Shown piece by piece: positions 54,104 to 61,411 of a stretch of 64,000 bases of DNA (position 1 is the stretch's first letter; the number at the start of each line of letters is the position of its first letter). Made by a program: the position numbers and the translations under genes. Origin of the DNA: Selaginella moellendorffii (Eukaryota > Plantae > Lycopodiophyta); the NCBI RefSeq assembly GCF_000143415.4, contig NW_003314268.1, positions 3,790,559 through 3,854,558 of the forward strand, in the 5' to 3' direction. The notes under the pieces were generated by a model. That model ran no database searches and was not told the origin of the DNA. It was given only the letters and a program-made list of their open reading frames with translations.

Positions 54104-55403
54104 AGGGAATACATTCTTGTACAATCACGATTTGTGCTGTGACGAGAGAAGTTTGAGGAACGCAAAGTTTTGATTTGGAGGAGGATAATTGTTTGTGGCT
54201 GGTTGGCTGATACACGAGCAAAAAAACTTATTTCACGGAGAAGCAAACAACGAAGCAAAGGATTTTCACGCCACGAATCACGATGGGCGATTAATTTGGA
54301 GGAGATCAATCGAAATCCTTCCTCCATCCATCGCTTGCATCGCATCAAAGAAGCAACAAAAACAACACGGAAAAACCTGAGAGTGAAAGACAGGCTCCAT
54401 GAATGCGCTCCGCACGGCCCTCGAAGCGTGGCATTGAATGGCCAAGGCTGGAATTATTACCACATCAAGTTGTCAACTTTTAAAACGAGCTAGAGCTCGG
54501 ATCAATGGCTGGATGGATGGATGGATGGAACCCTCCAATGAGGTAGCGTTTTACCTTTTTATACCTTACCCGGGGGTAAAAACGGGCAGGGATTTCCGCA
54601 ACGGAATGCGCGATTCCCGGGCGGGAATGTGTCTAAGGTTTAGGGTTTATCAGATCTGTGCGCTTGTTTTTAGTCGCGTGTTTCAGCTGATTCGGTGCCA
54701 AATGCGAGGAATCTAGCAGCGGCGGCAGCAGCAAACGATTCTTCCGCCTCAGCAGATGCCAGTTCCACGATTCGCAGTAGCGGCGCCAGATAATCTTCGT
54801 GTTTCTCCGCATTTCTCAAGGTAATCTTCCCATTCGCGAATCGCGACGCCGAGAGCTGTGGTTGCGGGCATTGATTCTCGCTCTCTAGATTCACAAGGGC
54901 CCGGGCTAGATTGGTAAATCGTCCTCCAGGTACCGGACAGTGGTGGGAAAAAGAATTAAGAACAGGGAGATAGGGCTTGCTTGCGCTGGAGGCATCTGGT
55001 AGAATATAAGGCAGGGCAGGTGCTCACAGGATTCTTTCCTCTTCTTTTTTCTCCTTTTTTCTTTCTCTTGGGGGCTTGCTTTATGAATGTAGCCAGAGCT
55101 ATTCCCGCTGTTAGTTCCTTGCTGCAGTACTACCGCGAGATTCAATGGGATTGAGTAGCGGCCTTTGTGGACGAATGGCAAGGCCACCAAGTTTTACTGC
55201 TGCTGCTGCTGCTATTACCATCTTCTCCAAAGAGGCAAGATCTGCGGCGACGTTACTACACTCTCCTGGGATCTCTCTCGGCTATGCTGGGAGGTCTGGC
55301 TCTACTGCTAGAAGCTGCTGGTAATGACGAAGATCAAGTAGAGCGGGATGGTGGTGGCGATGGAGCTTGGTGCGTAAAGCACCATCATGGCGACCCGAGA
55401 ATC

Positions 55404-57633
55404 ATGGACGAAGTGCAAAGAGGAACAAGATGGAGGAGGATATTTCTCTCATTGGTGGTGTCTGCCGGGGCGGGCATCGTTTTGCTCTTCATTGCCTTCG
55501 GCATTATAGTCTCTGCCGCGGGACAGAGACGACACCAGCGCAGTAGCAGTGGACAAGGCAGGCTTTCTCTTCTCGAGGAGAAGCAAAACTGTGAGTAACA
55601 TCAGCTCTTTTGTTTTGAGTTTCGAGTCACACTCTACTGAAAGCTCTCCTCTTGTTTGTTAGCGTTTGTAGCAACTTGTCCGGATGGATGGCTACGAGGA
55701 CCGGCTGATCGATGCTTTATGCTCGTCAACGCGAGCAGCACTTGGGAGGAATCCGAGACGAGTTGCCGGAACAGGAGTGGTCATCTGGCCTCTATAACTT
55801 CAGATGCCGAGGTCGCGTTTGTCAAAAGCCACTGTACCGGTGTCTTTGATCCGTGCTGGGTCGGGGCTGTGATATCCAACACCAGCCGGGGAGTTTTGTG
55901 GAGGTGGAGTGACTGTCACGTACGCTGGAATTTTTCCTTCGCTTCCAGCAATTGCTCCAGCTCGGGTTGCGTTAACTTGGGAGAATACTGCTTGTCTGTG
56001 TCAAGCATGCACGGGCTTGTACGTGAGAACTGTGGAGACAGGCATAGATTCGTCTGTGTTCTTGCTACGAAAGGTAACTCGGCAAGTTTGTATCGATTCC
56101 TTGTCTCTAAGCTTTTTTCTCTTGACTTGGCTTTAGAGGGCGAATGTATACGAGCTACAAACCGCAAAGCGTACCTCATCGTACTTATAGCCGTAAGCTG
56201 TTTGATACTTGTCACGGCATTAGCGATTGTCATCTGGCTTCTAGTCTATAGAAGGAAGAGGAGGAGGAGGAGATCGAGAAGAGCGCCGTCGTCTTCCATG
56301 GTGCCGCTCTCCTCGCTCAGACTATTTACTCTGGACGAGCTTAGGATCGCCACCAACAATTTTGGGATGGAGAACAGGCTCCGGGGTAGCACTTTCAAGG
56401 GGATTCTCTCCGATGGCGTTTTGGTGGCTGTTAAGAAGCTGGAACGATCGAGCTTCCAAAGCCGGAAAGAGTTTCTAGCGGAGATGAACCGGATAGCGCG
56501 GCTGCGGCATCCAAGTCTGGTGGCGGTCATTGGATGCTGCTACGATCACGGCGAGCGATACATAGCCTACGAGTACATCGCGAATGGGCCGCTCGACCTC
56601 TGGCTGCACGACCCCGTCAGGAGAGGAACGCTGGACTGGAGAACGAGGATGCAAATTGCGGTCACCGCTGCTCAAGGCATAGCGTAAGTAGTAACCTGGT
56701 TAGTTTCTCGTTTTCTTCGTTCTTTTTACGATTCAAGCGTTGCATGTAGGATAGTATTTCATCATATGCATCCGTTCTTTGACGATTCAATGTAGGATCC
56801 TTCATTCTTTGGTTTACTTGAGTATTGTAGCATCTGGTTTGACTGTTTTTCCGATTCGGTGATTGATCTTTGTTCATTTCTTTTTTCAGTACAAACCGCT
56901 GAGCGTGCCATGCTTGGCATCTAGAAAACTCCGGCTGGTTTCACTGATATGCTTGCGTTACTTCATTCCTTTTTCTCCCGTGTGGCACTAAGGACTTCGC
57001 TCTGGCAGATACTTGCACGACCAAGTGAAGCCTCATGTCATCCACAGGGACATCAAGGCGAGCAGCATTCTCCTCGACGACAAGTTCCACGGCCGCGTCA
57101 TGGGAGTGGGCCTGGCCAGCGTCGTGCCGTGGGAGGCCGCCTACGAGCGCACGGTGGTGGCAGGGACGCACGGCTACCTTGCCCCGGAGTTCGTCTACCG
57201 CAACGAGCTCACCACCAAGAGCGACGTCTACAGCTTCGGCGTGCTCATGCTGGAGCTCATCAGCGGCCGCAAGCCGGCCATGCCAGTGGACGTGGTGGAC
57301 TGGCAGACCATCTTCGAGTGGGCGACGCCACTGGTTCAGTCGCAGCAGCTGCAGGAGATCATTGATCCGTCGCTCACGTCGATTCCCGCCCCCGCACACA
57401 TCCAGATGCTCGTGGATCTCATCTACAGCTGCACGCAGCACGTCGCGTCCATGAGGCCTCGGATGTCTTACGTTGTTCATCAGCTCGATCAGCTCAAGGA
57501 CGTGGAGAGCTTGCAGCCCAGGCAGCAGCAGCAGCAGCAAATACAAGAGGTGGTTTATCCCGCGAGAGATGCTCGCTCCAAAGAGCCGGCTCTCATCACA
57601 GTCCAGTCGGAGATCATGGAGTCTCTCTTCTAG
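55404..57633 (+). CDS. C-type lectin receptor-like kinase (At1g52310-like); exons ~55404-55590, 55663-56073, 56137-56683, 57009-57633; alternative in-frame ATG at 55284
   Basis: CPDGW...CFML...TWEESETSC...HLASI...CWVG C-type lectin domain, TM segment, and kinase with the family-typical MGVGL in place of DFG and GYLAPEFVYRNELTTKSDVYSFG. Confidence 0.9.
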
Positions 57634-57792
57634 GCTCTCAAGGTTCCATTGGAAGAAAGAACTCGTTATGGTAGAAAGGAGAAACTTTGTGCTTGACTTT
57701 ATCCATTAACGCCAGAATTGTCATTGTTTCCTCTCAAATACTTTTCTCTTTTTCTTTCCTGTGATTATTTACTTTGCAGTAACTCTAGTCCG

Positions 57793-57852
57793 CATGCAAG
57801 CTATGTGGCCAAGAACTTTACCATGCAGACTTCCGGTTAACCCTCTATAAAT
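57793..57852 (+). promoter_or_regulatory. Promoter with two RY boxes (CATGCA at 57793-98 and 57822-27), an ABRE-like ATGTGGC between them and TATAAAT at 57846-52
   Basis: Motifs seen directly, about 95-155 bp upstream of the ATG at 57948. Confidence 0.65.
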
Positions 57853-57947
57853 TCACCGCGCTCGCTCCAGCTCTCCATCAAGCTCACGAGTTTCATCTCA
57901 TTCGCTCTGTTGTTTTCTCTTTGGTTTCGATTCTCTAACTCCTCCAA

Positions 57948-58367
57948 ATGGCGTCGATCAAGTTCGTGGCTGCTGTCTTGGTGCTCATGGTGGTGGCCGC
58001 GGCGGCCATGCGCGACTGGAACGATTCCCCTCGCGACCGCCGCCGCGAGCGGGAGTGCCGCCAACTGCGCGGGCAGCTGCAGCAGTGCTCGCGCGACAGT
58101 CCCTCGCCCCAGTGCTGCAGTGTGGCGCGCCAGTACGTGGAGAGCAAAGGTTGCCGCCCTCGCGACATTGGAGCCGACCTCCTCCAGCACTGCCAGCAGC
58201 AGCAGCAGCAGCGAGGCGATGACGATGACGATCAGGAGCGCCGCCGCTACTACAACGACGACGATGATCGAGGTAAAGCCAGCTATAAACTTTCTTGGTC
58301 TTGATTTCTTCTTCATTGCTTTTGTTTTCCAGAGGTTCTCGACTTCATCCGTGGAGCATGGTTCTAG
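57948..58367 (+). CDS. Secreted Cys-rich prolamin-superfamily (2S albumin-like) protein, 119 aa; exons 57948-58272 and 58333-58367
   Basis: 20-aa signal peptide, C-X9-C-X8-CC-X11-C-X12-C, Arg/Gln/Asp-rich. A 60-bp GT-AG intron gives the C-terminus EVLDFIRGAWF*. Confidence 0.75.
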
Positions 58368-58805
58368 ATCGTAGAGACTGTGGAGAGCATGAAAATGGAT
58401 GGGAGCTGATCGCTCTAAATAAATGCTCAGACTTGGAGTAATAATAAGAATTTGTTTGTGTGACAGCTTTTTACATGAAATATATCTAGAAAAATTAGTC
58501 GAATAAACAAAAAAATGTGTGATAGAATAGAAGCTTTCACAAACAAGTAAAGATGCTTCGAAAAAAGCTATGTGATCATTTATGCAGACCATCTGAAGAG
58601 CATGAAAATGCAATTGCACGATAACTAACTGTAAGGGATGGTGGCACAGATGGTCAGCACGTATATTTCATCGCTGGTGCAAACTTGAGGTCGAGACATT
58701 GCTTTTTCAAAAGAGGTTTCTTGATTAGTGCTATATATTTCGATCAAGCAACATATTTCAGTTTAGGTTGTAGATGAAAACAATTCCCTCTCCTCTCGTT
58801 TTAAA

Positions 58806-59685: not shown

Positions 59686-60183
59686 TGATTGGCTTAGTTT
59701 CATAATTCTAGAGATTTCTGGAAAACTATTTGGGTTAAAGCCTTTTCGTTTGCTTAAGGGCTATAGTATTACCCTTTTTTGTTAAAAGTAGGATTTAAAA
59801 TCAAAATTTTTAGTTAATTAAAAATGGTTTAAAATACAGCATTAATCCATTTTAATTTGAGTTTAGTATGAATTTTATATTTTTTGGTTTGTTTAAGCAA
59901 CCCTAAAATATGACAATATTCTACCATCTAACGGTTGTTATTCTTTTAGATTAATCTTCTATTTATTATTTATAATATAAACTTTCTTAAACACTTCTGA
60001 TTAATCTTGCGTTTATAAATTATAGCTAAAGGTTTGAATAAGATTATTAGATTTAAATAATTTGTTGTCCGCTACATGCACGTTTAATAGTATTGCTATT
60101 CATTTTTAGTATTATTTATTAATCGAATTGATCAATCAGAATTTTATAACTAAACAGAATAAAAGTAAATGTGGTAATTAAAA

Positions 60184-60774
60184 TCAAATATTTATTCTCT
60201 CTGGGCGTTGATTGACACGAACAACCCAAGGTTTCCCACTTGCACTCTGAACTTGAATTCTCCCAATCTTCTGGAGCGCAGCTGGAACATCCACCTCTCC
60301 ACAGTTGGCAGCAATGGCGTCCAAGTGTGGCCGCAAATCTTCAAACAAGCTGTCCTTTCCATCGCTCATCTCAACCATGAAATTGGGAACCACCAGCCCG
60401 TTCCCCGGCTGCTTGTCAAAAGCCGTCTCAGTGTCATCAAGCCACACCACCCTCGCTAAATCGCGTCCGAATGCTTGGGCGCTCAGATCTTTGCTCCTGG
60501 TAGGGCACGATTCCCTGCTAAGCCTCTGGGAGATCAAAGTTCCCGTGGGATCCAGCTTGTCCGCTATGCCATTCACATAAGGCTCGTAGTTGTAGGAAAA
60601 GATGACAATCTCATACAGCTTTGCCATGTCTCGCAGGAATTTGTCAAGGCCCGGACGTTTGTAGACGGCATAGCCCTCAACTACCATGTCAGCTCCCATA
60701 CCTGAGGAGTTTTTGAGCCTACGAGCGCAAATCAGCGTTCCATCGAGATCCAGCACCAGAGTTGGCTTGCCCAT
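60184..60774 (-). CDS. SCP/FCP1-like (NIF, HAD-family) CTD-type phosphatase, intronless
   Basis: KPTLVLDLDGTL (DxDxT), YKRPGLDKFL, YEIVIFS, KDLS...GRDLARVVWLDD, PGNGLVV. Confidence 0.85.
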   Translation of the reverse strand: MGKPTLVLDLDGTLICARRLKNSSGMGADMVVEGYAVYKRPGLDKFLRDMAKLYEIVIFSYNYEPYVNGIADKLDPTGTLISQRLSRESCPTRSKDLSAQAFGRDLARVVWLDDTETAFDKQPGNGLVVPNFMVEMSDGKDSLFEDLRPHLDAIAANCGEVDVPAALQKIGRIQVQSASGKPWVVRVNQRPERINI

Positions 60775-60840
60775 TGTTAGGTTTCTACCCAATAGAGCTT
60801 TGTAATTTATAAGGAAGTAAACCTTTTCTAATCCCTTTTG

Positions 60841-61411
60841 TTATTTGTTCTTCGCTGAGGCTTGCCTTCTTTCTCTGGCTCTTTTCTGCAAGCAAACGAA
60901 AGATTGGAAGATTTTGACATTGTAGCGGAGCTTACCCTGCAGTCTGCGACCATCTGCGGCATTCTCTGCATAATCTCGGCAGTGGTCTTCCTCCTGAAAT
61001 CGCGAATCAAGCAAAGCATTTGGAAGAGTTTGATGCAAACCTCTCGGCAGAGATCCTGTCGCCCTTGTGACCCTTCATCACGTTCCTCATCTCCTTGCGT
61101 GGCTTATCGTAAGGCCAGTCTCTACACGAGCAAAAGTCCCAATGGGGAAAAGGAAGGGCGAAGAACAAAAGAAGAACTGAGAAAGAGTAGAGAAATGTGA
61201 GAAAATCTTACCCTCCCGCGAGCAGCACTTCCCTCTTGATCTTGGCCCTCTGGCGAGCGCTGATCTGCAGCGGCTTCCAGCGGTGATCCTCCCAGTAGCC
61301 CCACACGCCCTTCTTGAGCTCCTCGCCCCATCGCTTGAGCTTCTCCACGGGCATCTGTGGCGCCGGCATTGACGCTATGCGCTTCATCCACTCCGCTCGC
61401 CCGCCCCCCAT
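60841..61411 (-). CDS. Mitochondrial ribosomal protein mL59/MRP-L25-like; 4 exons (61411-61212, 61121-61041, 60993-60936, 60885-60841)
   Basis: RWKPLQISARQRAKIKREVLLAGGDWPYDKPRKEMRNVMKGHKGDR...IMQRMPQMVADCRKR, assembled through three GT-AG introns. Telo-box TTAGGGTTT just upstream (~61428). Confidence 0.8.

Follow-up and report, generated by a model that had tools for sequence, protein, structure and literature searches.

SELMODRAFT_439725 of Selaginella moellendorffii, a six-cysteine orphan among small disulfide-rich secretory pro-proteins

In a window of 64,000 nucleotides from Selaginella moellendorffii (contig NW_003314268.1, forward strand, positions 3,790,559 to 3,854,558; all positions below are counted from the first letter of this stretch), we have analysed a small gene that had been predicted, from the letters alone, to encode a 2S-albumin-like storage protein of a seedless plant. 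The source is indeed a seedless plant, a lycophyte, and the gene is SELMODRAFT_439725 (EFJ32466.1, XP_002966439.1, UniProt D8R5D2), which has two exons and encodes 119 residues. We show that it is a genuine single-copy gene with one allele per haplotype and that, as far as can be seen from sequence searches, it appears to be restricted to this lineage. The reading that we favour, and hold with slightly less than even confidence, is that its product is a lineage-restricted small secretory, possibly vacuolar, pro-protein with a six-cysteine core, an acidic extension and a hydrophobic C-terminus. It cannot be filed under the 2S albumins or the lipid transfer proteins of the non-specific type (nsLTPs), because it lacks the eight-cysteine motif (8CM), any Pfam match and any detectable relative, because its intron is placed differently, and because its core holds few hydrophobic residues.

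A word-index protein search with exon 1 returned a single protein at 100% match, 'hypothetical protein SELMODRAFT_439725'; its RefSeq label is 'uncharacterized protein LOC9652647' and its automatic UniRef name is 'Bifunctional inhibitor/plant lipid transfer protein/seed storage helical ...'. When spliced together, exons 1 and 2 translate to exactly the public 119-residue protein of both JGI and RefSeq, and the separate mini-exon for EVLDFIRGAWF that had been proposed beforehand is thus identical to the public record. The intron is placed 26 codons beyond the last cysteine codon, and its retention would give a product ending in GKASYKLSWS in place of the hydrophobic tail. When the spliced product and the one that keeps the intron were looked up as exact proteins, the two NCBI genome scaffolds alone came back, a result that is uninformative on transcripts. 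The gene and its protein are laid out as follows.

57948..58272, + strand: coding part of exon 1, codons 1-108 and the first base of codon 109, opening with the ATG at 57948 and ending in phase 1
57948..58007, + strand: signal peptide, residues 1-20, MASIK and then a 15-residue hydrophobic run ending in AAAA, recognised by inspection, with a putative cleavage site
58056..58193, + strand: six-cysteine core, residues 37-82, net charge +3, predicted to be helical
58212..58271, + strand: acidic low-complexity extension, residues 89-108, net charge -5, holding N103-D104
58273..58332, + strand: the single intron, 60 nt, GT..AG, phase 1, 35% GC, whose removal gives the public protein
58333..58367, + strand: coding part of exon 2, the tail (E)VLDFIRGAWF and the TAG stop (58365-58367), a candidate C-terminal vacuolar sorting determinant (ctVSD)
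58418..58423, + strand: AATAAA poly(A) signal, 51 nt past the stop, found by motif scan

We judge the gene to be real because it has a canonical intron, a TATA box, a favourable start context (AAATGGC at the ATG at 57948), a poly(A) signal, a sharp step in GC content (67% in exon 1 versus 35-42% in the promoter, the intron and the 3' flank) and a coding sequence that is conserved relative to its flanks. Over the whole coding sequence, GC at third codon positions is 81%. The second member of the protein cluster, SELMODRAFT_438955, is listed with V12M as its only protein change. The two lie on scaffolds GL377572.1 and GL377569.1 and are flanked by the same neighbours; they are therefore two haplotypes of one locus. 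The haplotypes differ at 2 of the 360 nt of coding sequence, one difference being synonymous and the other falling in the signal peptide, versus 12 of 486 nt of non-coding flank (Fisher p=0.03). A tblastn search of exon 1 against the 64-kb window found no paralogue, and the gene has no entry in the accessible supplementary data of the preprint that presents the S. moellendorffii expression atlas.

The signal peptide, the Arg/Gln/Asp-rich body and the six-cysteine skeleton without CXC, on which the original prediction had been built, are all present. The cysteines stand at residues 37, 47, 56, 57, 69 and 82, which gives C-X9-C-X8-CC-X11-C-X12-C. The mature part (residues 21-119) holds 18 Arg, 16 Asp and 14 Gln per 99 residues, so that these three make up 48% of it, and it is strongly hydrophilic, with a grand average of hydropathy (GRAVY) of -1.70 and 1.76 nitrogen atoms per residue. 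The core is mildly basic (pI 8.7), and 10 of its 46 residues are hydrophobic (GRAVY -0.81). Net charge is +1 over residues 25-36 and -4 over the last 16 residues. The Asn-Asp sites that were said to bracket the core are confirmed: N25 and N103 are the sole Asn residues, one on either side of the cysteines and each followed by Asp. The C-terminal third of exon 1 (58194-58271, + strand) resembles a microsatellite, in that (CAG)6 gives way to runs of GAT/GAC, and this stretch is identical in both haplotypes, with no length polymorphism between the two alleles.

The tail EVLDFIRGAWF, described beforehand as of vacuolar type, is present and agrees with what is known of such signals. From the structure of VSR1-PA with the cruciferin peptide RVAAA, qualitative rules for ctVSDs have been drawn, namely a free carboxylate, hydrophobic residues at the last two positions, a preference for basic residues, and a disfavour of Pro and acidic residues nearby (PMC8740768). 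The end FIRGAWF of our protein fits these rules, in that its last two residues are hydrophobic, Arg stands at -5, and the last seven residues hold neither Pro nor an acidic residue; the fit speaks for compatibility only. A glycosylphosphatidylinositol anchor and retention in the endoplasmic reticulum (ER) were also considered for the tail and ruled out, as it has 11 residues, no long hydrophobic stretch and no K/HDEL.

We infer by analogy that the product may work like a vacuolar pro-protein of the 2S-albumin, thionin or class-II-defensin type. The pro-protein would enter the ER co-translationally, where three disulfides would hold a three-helix bundle. The pairs that the geometry of an up-down three-helix bundle suggests are C37-C69, C47-C56 and C57-C82. 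These predicted pairs would correspond to the C1-C5 / C2-C3 / C4-C7 pattern of the prolamin superfamily minus its fourth bridge, and C1-C5 / C2-C3 / C4-C7 is the pattern of the type II 8CM (PMC9832785). Receptors of the VSR/RMR type could then read the free hydrophobic C-terminus (RGAWF) and direct the protein to a vacuole, and a protease of the legumain/vacuolar processing enzyme (VPE) type may cut after N25 and N103. Such cleavage would release a short N-terminal piece, a 16-residue acidic-hydrophobic C-terminal propeptide, and a 78-residue core product of about 9.3 kDa, which would be Arg/Gln-rich and disulfide-stabilised. Storage and defence, or both together, cannot be separated as functions from sequence alone. 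That the gene is single-copy and without detectable relatives suits a bulk reserve protein no better than it suits a defence or signalling peptide that evolves fast.

Family searches did not place the protein among its supposed relatives. With E<=10 as the limit, hmmscan against Pfam was run on four slices (exon 1, whole protein, mature part, core) and detected none of PF00234, PF14368, PF05617 and PF14547, and the eight-cysteine motif (C-Xn-C-Xn-CC-Xn-CXC-Xn-C-Xn-C) is absent, as the protein has six cysteines, no CXC and no eighth cysteine. The claim of a 2S-albumin-like family therefore fails at the profile level: with six cysteines in place of eight, the protein matches no 2S albumin, nsLTP or prolamin-like profile in Pfam. 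The sub-threshold Pfam matches, which we rate as noise, were Conotoxin (E=0.035, with the same C-C-CC-C-C framework), CX9C (E=0.14-0.23) and Importin. The PDB, searched with phmmer, yielded a de novo designed protein (E=0.016) and nothing relevant. Behind the UniRef name there should be a match to some signature of InterPro, which the Pfam scan here did not reproduce. The named language-model neighbours in the ESM-Atlas all belong to LTP, 2S or prolamin-like clusters, with scores of 0.76-0.80 that are under the level rated meaningful, and these are leads only. The automatic UniRef name and these weak neighbours are the only support for the prolamin superfamily, and we regard descent from it as somewhat less probable than an even chance.

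Structure models agree with a helical core. AlphaFold2 single-sequence models of the full-length and the mature protein had mean pLDDT of 69.9 and 66.3, with 75-86 over the core, and both placed helices at 28-50, 54-67 and 71-98 in a generic three-helix bundle. Foldseek searches of the PDB with both models gave no match at E<=0.001, and a wide fold search independent of Foldseek reached Z scores of 6.3-6.8 at best, the matches being bundles of the BAG, C-Ala and TPR-like kinds; neither an LTP nor a 2S structure was among the top 50. A shape search of the atlas returned generic bundles, and a further fold search of the PDB returned nothing. Comparison with 2S albumin and nsLTP structures had been proposed as a check; the models predict a helical core, and the searches gave no LTP or 2S structure among the matches, the models being of middling confidence. 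At this strength the models leave room for a right-handed superhelix of four to five helices.

Several results weigh against the pro-protein reading that we favour. Two word searches, the second with residues 27-100 at E<=10, returned self or haplotype matches only, and an exhaustive phmmer search of 1.84 billion representative proteins returned only the protein itself. As no homologue was found, conservation cannot support a function. A literature search by gene, locus, UniProt and RefSeq identifiers found SELMODRAFT_439725 unnamed. The best Z scores of 6.3-6.8 are below the stated noise level for helical proteins, and they come from single-sequence models of middling confidence. What is said of disulfide pairs, of sorting to the vacuole and of cleavage at Asn is deduced from the protein sequence, and the Gln and Asp low-complexity runs could be neutral microsatellite-like expansions. 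The fit of the tail to the sorting rules would be weak evidence, because ctVSDs have no consensus (PMC8740768).

It is conceivable, if unlikely, that the gene encodes a defence pro-peptide, in which a basic, disulfide-rich antimicrobial core is neutralised and carried to the vacuole by an acidic C-terminal propeptide. Thionins and class II defensins have such an acidic C-terminal propeptide, and they share the design of a vacuolar pro-protein with storage 2S albumins. The layout of charge along our protein is of this kind, with +3 in the core, +1 over residues 25-36, -5 in the acidic stretch and -4 in the putative 16-residue propeptide, and it is accompanied by a signal peptide and a hydrophobic C-terminus; a lineage-restricted, fast-evolving sequence is also typical of defence peptides. 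However, the cysteine pattern is unmatched by the thionin, defensin, hairpinin and snakin profiles of Pfam, and the core, with a pI of 8.7, is only mildly basic.

We consider it quite unlikely that the product is of the six-cysteine 'prolamin-like' (EC1/ECA1) type and serves in the apoplast as a cysteine-rich signalling peptide or as a small secreted protein, the tail then being no sorting signal. The C..C..CC..C..C skeleton with an initial C-X9-C is arranged as in EC1-type prolamin-like domains, and one of the language-model neighbour clusters is 84% PF05617 (score 0.77, a lead only). Yet PF05617 itself gave no match, the loop lengths differ, no relatives were found, and the extremely hydrophilic and charged composition is unlike that of EC1 proteins.

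The storage function that goes back to the original prediction, in which the gene would encode a homologue of 2S albumins that serves for storage in the spore, megagametophyte or embryo, under ABI3/LEC2-type B3 control through RY boxes and as part of a regulon older than the seed, is in our judgement improbable. In the promoter, the arrangement CATGCA-ATGTGGC-CATGCA-TATA within 60 bp is confirmed, as all four motifs are found on the + strand inside 59 bp.

57793..57798, + strand: distal RY box CATGCA, 53 bp upstream of the TATA box, which reads CATGTA on the other haplotype (single-nucleotide polymorphism at 57797)
57803..57809, + strand: ATGTGGC, a look-alike of the abscisic acid-responsive element (ABRE) or G-box that has no ACGT core and is not an ABRE
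57822..57827, + strand: proximal RY box CATGCA, 24 bp upstream of the TATA box, present on both haplotypes (motif scan and haplotype alignment)
57846..57851, + strand: TATAAA box, found by motif scan

Transcription would start about 30 bp downstream of TATAAA, where a CT-rich leader of about 70 nt would begin; two copies of CATGCA thus lie within about 250 bp of the putative start site. The upstream neighbour (about 55050-57633, + strand) encodes a receptor-like kinase of 629/630 residues with a C-type lectin domain (PF00059) and a kinase domain. Its stop lies 314 bp before the ATG of the six-cysteine gene, and the entire promoter of the latter is therefore confined to a very short intergenic space. 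No ACGT core occurs in 57634-57947, the whole of this 314-bp region, and hence there is no other ABRE. The signature of RY plus ABRE that had been claimed is accordingly reduced to its RY part, with two CATGCA boxes and an ATGTGGC that lacks the ACGT core. At 57648-57652, about 200 bp upstream of the TATA box, ATTGG occurs once (read on the minus strand, CCAAT); this may be an NF-Y/LEC1-type site, but one 5-mer of this kind is expected by chance.

CATGCA is found 49 times in the window (46.8 expected), and there is one non-overlapping pair of sites 6-40 bp apart (1.1 expected in simulated sequence). For any one 100-bp proximal promoter, at least two CATGCA sites are expected with a probability of about 0.003, so that tens of genes of this kind are still predicted for a genome of this size. 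The RY pair as such is not enriched and stands out for its position alone. Comparison of the haplotypes suggests no sign of special constraint on the cis-module, because the distal RY box is CATGTA on the other haplotype and because the 60-bp module holds 3 of the 8 intergenic differences, the other 254 bp holding 5. Mönke et al. 2012 (PMC3458547) describe an enrichment of RY-like and G-box-like motifs close to where ABI3 target genes start, but these motifs are also common in non-target promoters and the presence of an RY box alone is not diagnostic (PMC3458547). Control by an ABI3/LEC2-type B3 factor through the proximal RY box is possible but unproven.

Beyond the two RY boxes no more than 55 bp upstream of the TATA box, a storage function is favoured by the nitrogen-rich mature part (18% Arg, 14% Gln, 1.76 nitrogen atoms per residue), by a tail compatible with a ctVSD and by Asn on both flanks of the core. 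Storage proteins are normally multigene families, but neither relatives nor paralogues of this gene were detected. Six cysteines in place of eight, the lack of a PF00234, PF14368 or PF05617 match and of a fold match, the missing ABRE or G-box, and the distal RY box destroyed on the other haplotype, in a module with 3 of the 8 intergenic differences, also argue against storage. On the side of regulation, expression of SmoLEC1 and of SmoAFLB and SmoAFLC, both of LEC2 type, peaks in strobili (PMC3680378, PMC5379062), and an interplay of RY boxes and ABI3 has been reported for ferns and mosses (PMC3458547), whereas many promoters outside the ABI3 targets also contain RY motifs (PMC3458547) and, according to a genome survey, plants without seeds have no 2S albumin genes (PMC10006428). 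Equally improbable, in our estimate, is a lycophyte-specific form of the same idea, in which megaspores, bulbils or embryos would make a six-cysteine, VPE-processed vacuolar reserve protein, the RY box placing its gene under B3 control of the LEC2/ABI3 type; if true, such a reserve protein would be a convergent or extremely diverged counterpart of the 2S albumins. Taken as a whole, the original prediction is partly supported: this is a secretory gene of a seedless plant with a layout that fits a 2S-type pro-protein, but membership of the family is not supported, the proposed ABRE is none, and the storage role and the regulon are conjectural.

Least probable of all is that the gene is an annotation-only or barely functional young orphan, a GC-rich, repeat-bearing open frame with a signal-like N-terminus arisen by chance: the lack of any homologue among 1.84 billion representative proteins, the low-complexity (CAG)6 and GAY runs and the open state of other frames of the block (154 residues on the + strand, 260 on the minus strand) would fit it, but an even number of cysteines in a helical core, the canonical intron, TATA box, favourable start context and poly(A) signal, a coding sequence more conserved than its flanks between haplotypes, the same spliced protein in two independent annotations, and alternative frames without a family match all stand against it.

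The two alternative frames were considered as coding candidates over the same block and rejected, as neither the 260-residue minus-strand frame nor the 154-residue + strand frame has a family match. The former (57837-58619, - strand) spans the whole gene and its AT-rich 3' flank, has Pox_A11 as its best Pfam match (E=0.006, under the cut-off), and is probably a by-product of the codon-repeat composition. Downstream, at about 59790-61020 on the - strand, lie a 196-residue NIF-domain protein (PF03031, CTD-phosphatase-like) and a 127-residue protein without a Pfam match. The stretch around the six-cysteine gene is gene-dense, in contrast to the transposon-rich middle of the window noted in the first reading of the sequence.

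As the evidence stands, SELMODRAFT_439725 is one more uncharacterised lineage-restricted cysteine-rich secretory protein. It is worth asking what a storage or maturation function, if true, would mean. The maturation programme of a lycophyte would then have its first concrete target among storage proteins, and the gene would show that the 2S-albumin design is workable with three disulfides. It would also offer a handle on what the LEC1/AFL network turned on in propagules and spores at a time before seeds, and this in the only lycophyte whose strobili are known to express genes of the LEC1 and LEC2 types. That genes of the LEC1 and LEC2 types are expressed in Selaginella strobili has been reported (PMC3680378, PMC5379062), and that the RY/B3 maturation programme is older than seeds has already been published for ferns and mosses (PMC3458547). 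Since both 2S-like spore proteins and RY/B3 control are on record for seedless plants, in publications on ferns and mosses, validation of a storage protein in a lycophyte would fill a gap and would not overturn a concept.

How the gene relates to known systems can be considered for its promoter and its protein in turn. In the RY/G complex of the napin napA promoter and the legumin box, the nearest counterpart is the arrangement of two CATGCA boxes around a G-box-like heptamer, which here lies within about 85 bp of the putative start site. The difference is that ATGT replaces the ACGT core, with no other ABRE present, and that the distal RY box is polymorphic between haplotypes.

For the protein, the charge layout has its closest parallels in thionins, NaD1-like class II defensins, barley lectin and tobacco chitinase A, all of which are vacuolar pro-proteins with acidic C-terminal propeptides. 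With these the product of SELMODRAFT_439725 shares, on general grounds, a signal peptide, a basic cysteine-rich domain and an acidic extension with a hydrophobic end, whereas its cysteine framework and predicted all-helical fold are unrelated to theirs and it matches none of their families.

The nsLTPs are likewise small and secreted, and have in common with our protein an initial C-X9-C, a CC doublet, a single intron downstream of the cysteine domain and the same automatic superfamily label in UniRef. They differ in the eight-cysteine motif, which is lacking here together with any PF14368 or PF00234 match. The spacing of 8 between C2 and CC, a loop of sequence SRDSPSPQ, and the span of 46 residues both fall short of what nsLTP types have. 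Moreover, a core with 10 of 46 residues hydrophobic and a GRAVY of -0.81 is a poor basis for a lipid cavity, and its composition would argue against lipid binding. In nsLTP types with a fixed intron position, the intron follows just after the C8 codon, or four nucleotides downstream in type D (PMC9832785), whereas here it lies 26 codons past the last cysteine codon and thus away from these positions. For S. moellendorffii, 43 nsLTP genes have been reported (PMC9832785, citing Edstam 2011).

Finally, the 2S albumins (napin, Ber e 1, SFA-8; PF00234) include a counterpart in a seedless plant, since a 2S-type spore protein of the ostrich fern, the 2.2S matteuccin, was described by Rodin and Rask 1990, as cited in PMC4973428. 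SELMODRAFT_439725 departs from 2S albumins and matteuccin in having six cysteines in place of eight, no CXC and no C8, a span of 46 residues from C1 to the last cysteine with no internal linker for two-chain processing, no profile, sequence or fold match, a single copy and an intron. It resembles them in its signal peptide, in a small, Arg/Gln-rich, hydrophilic, helical and disulfide-linked core with a CC doublet, in propeptides bounded by Asn, in a hydrophobic C-terminal end of the vacuolar-sorting kind, and in RY boxes near the TATA box. Among small disulfide-rich secretory pro-proteins, SELMODRAFT_439725 is a six-cysteine orphan variant.

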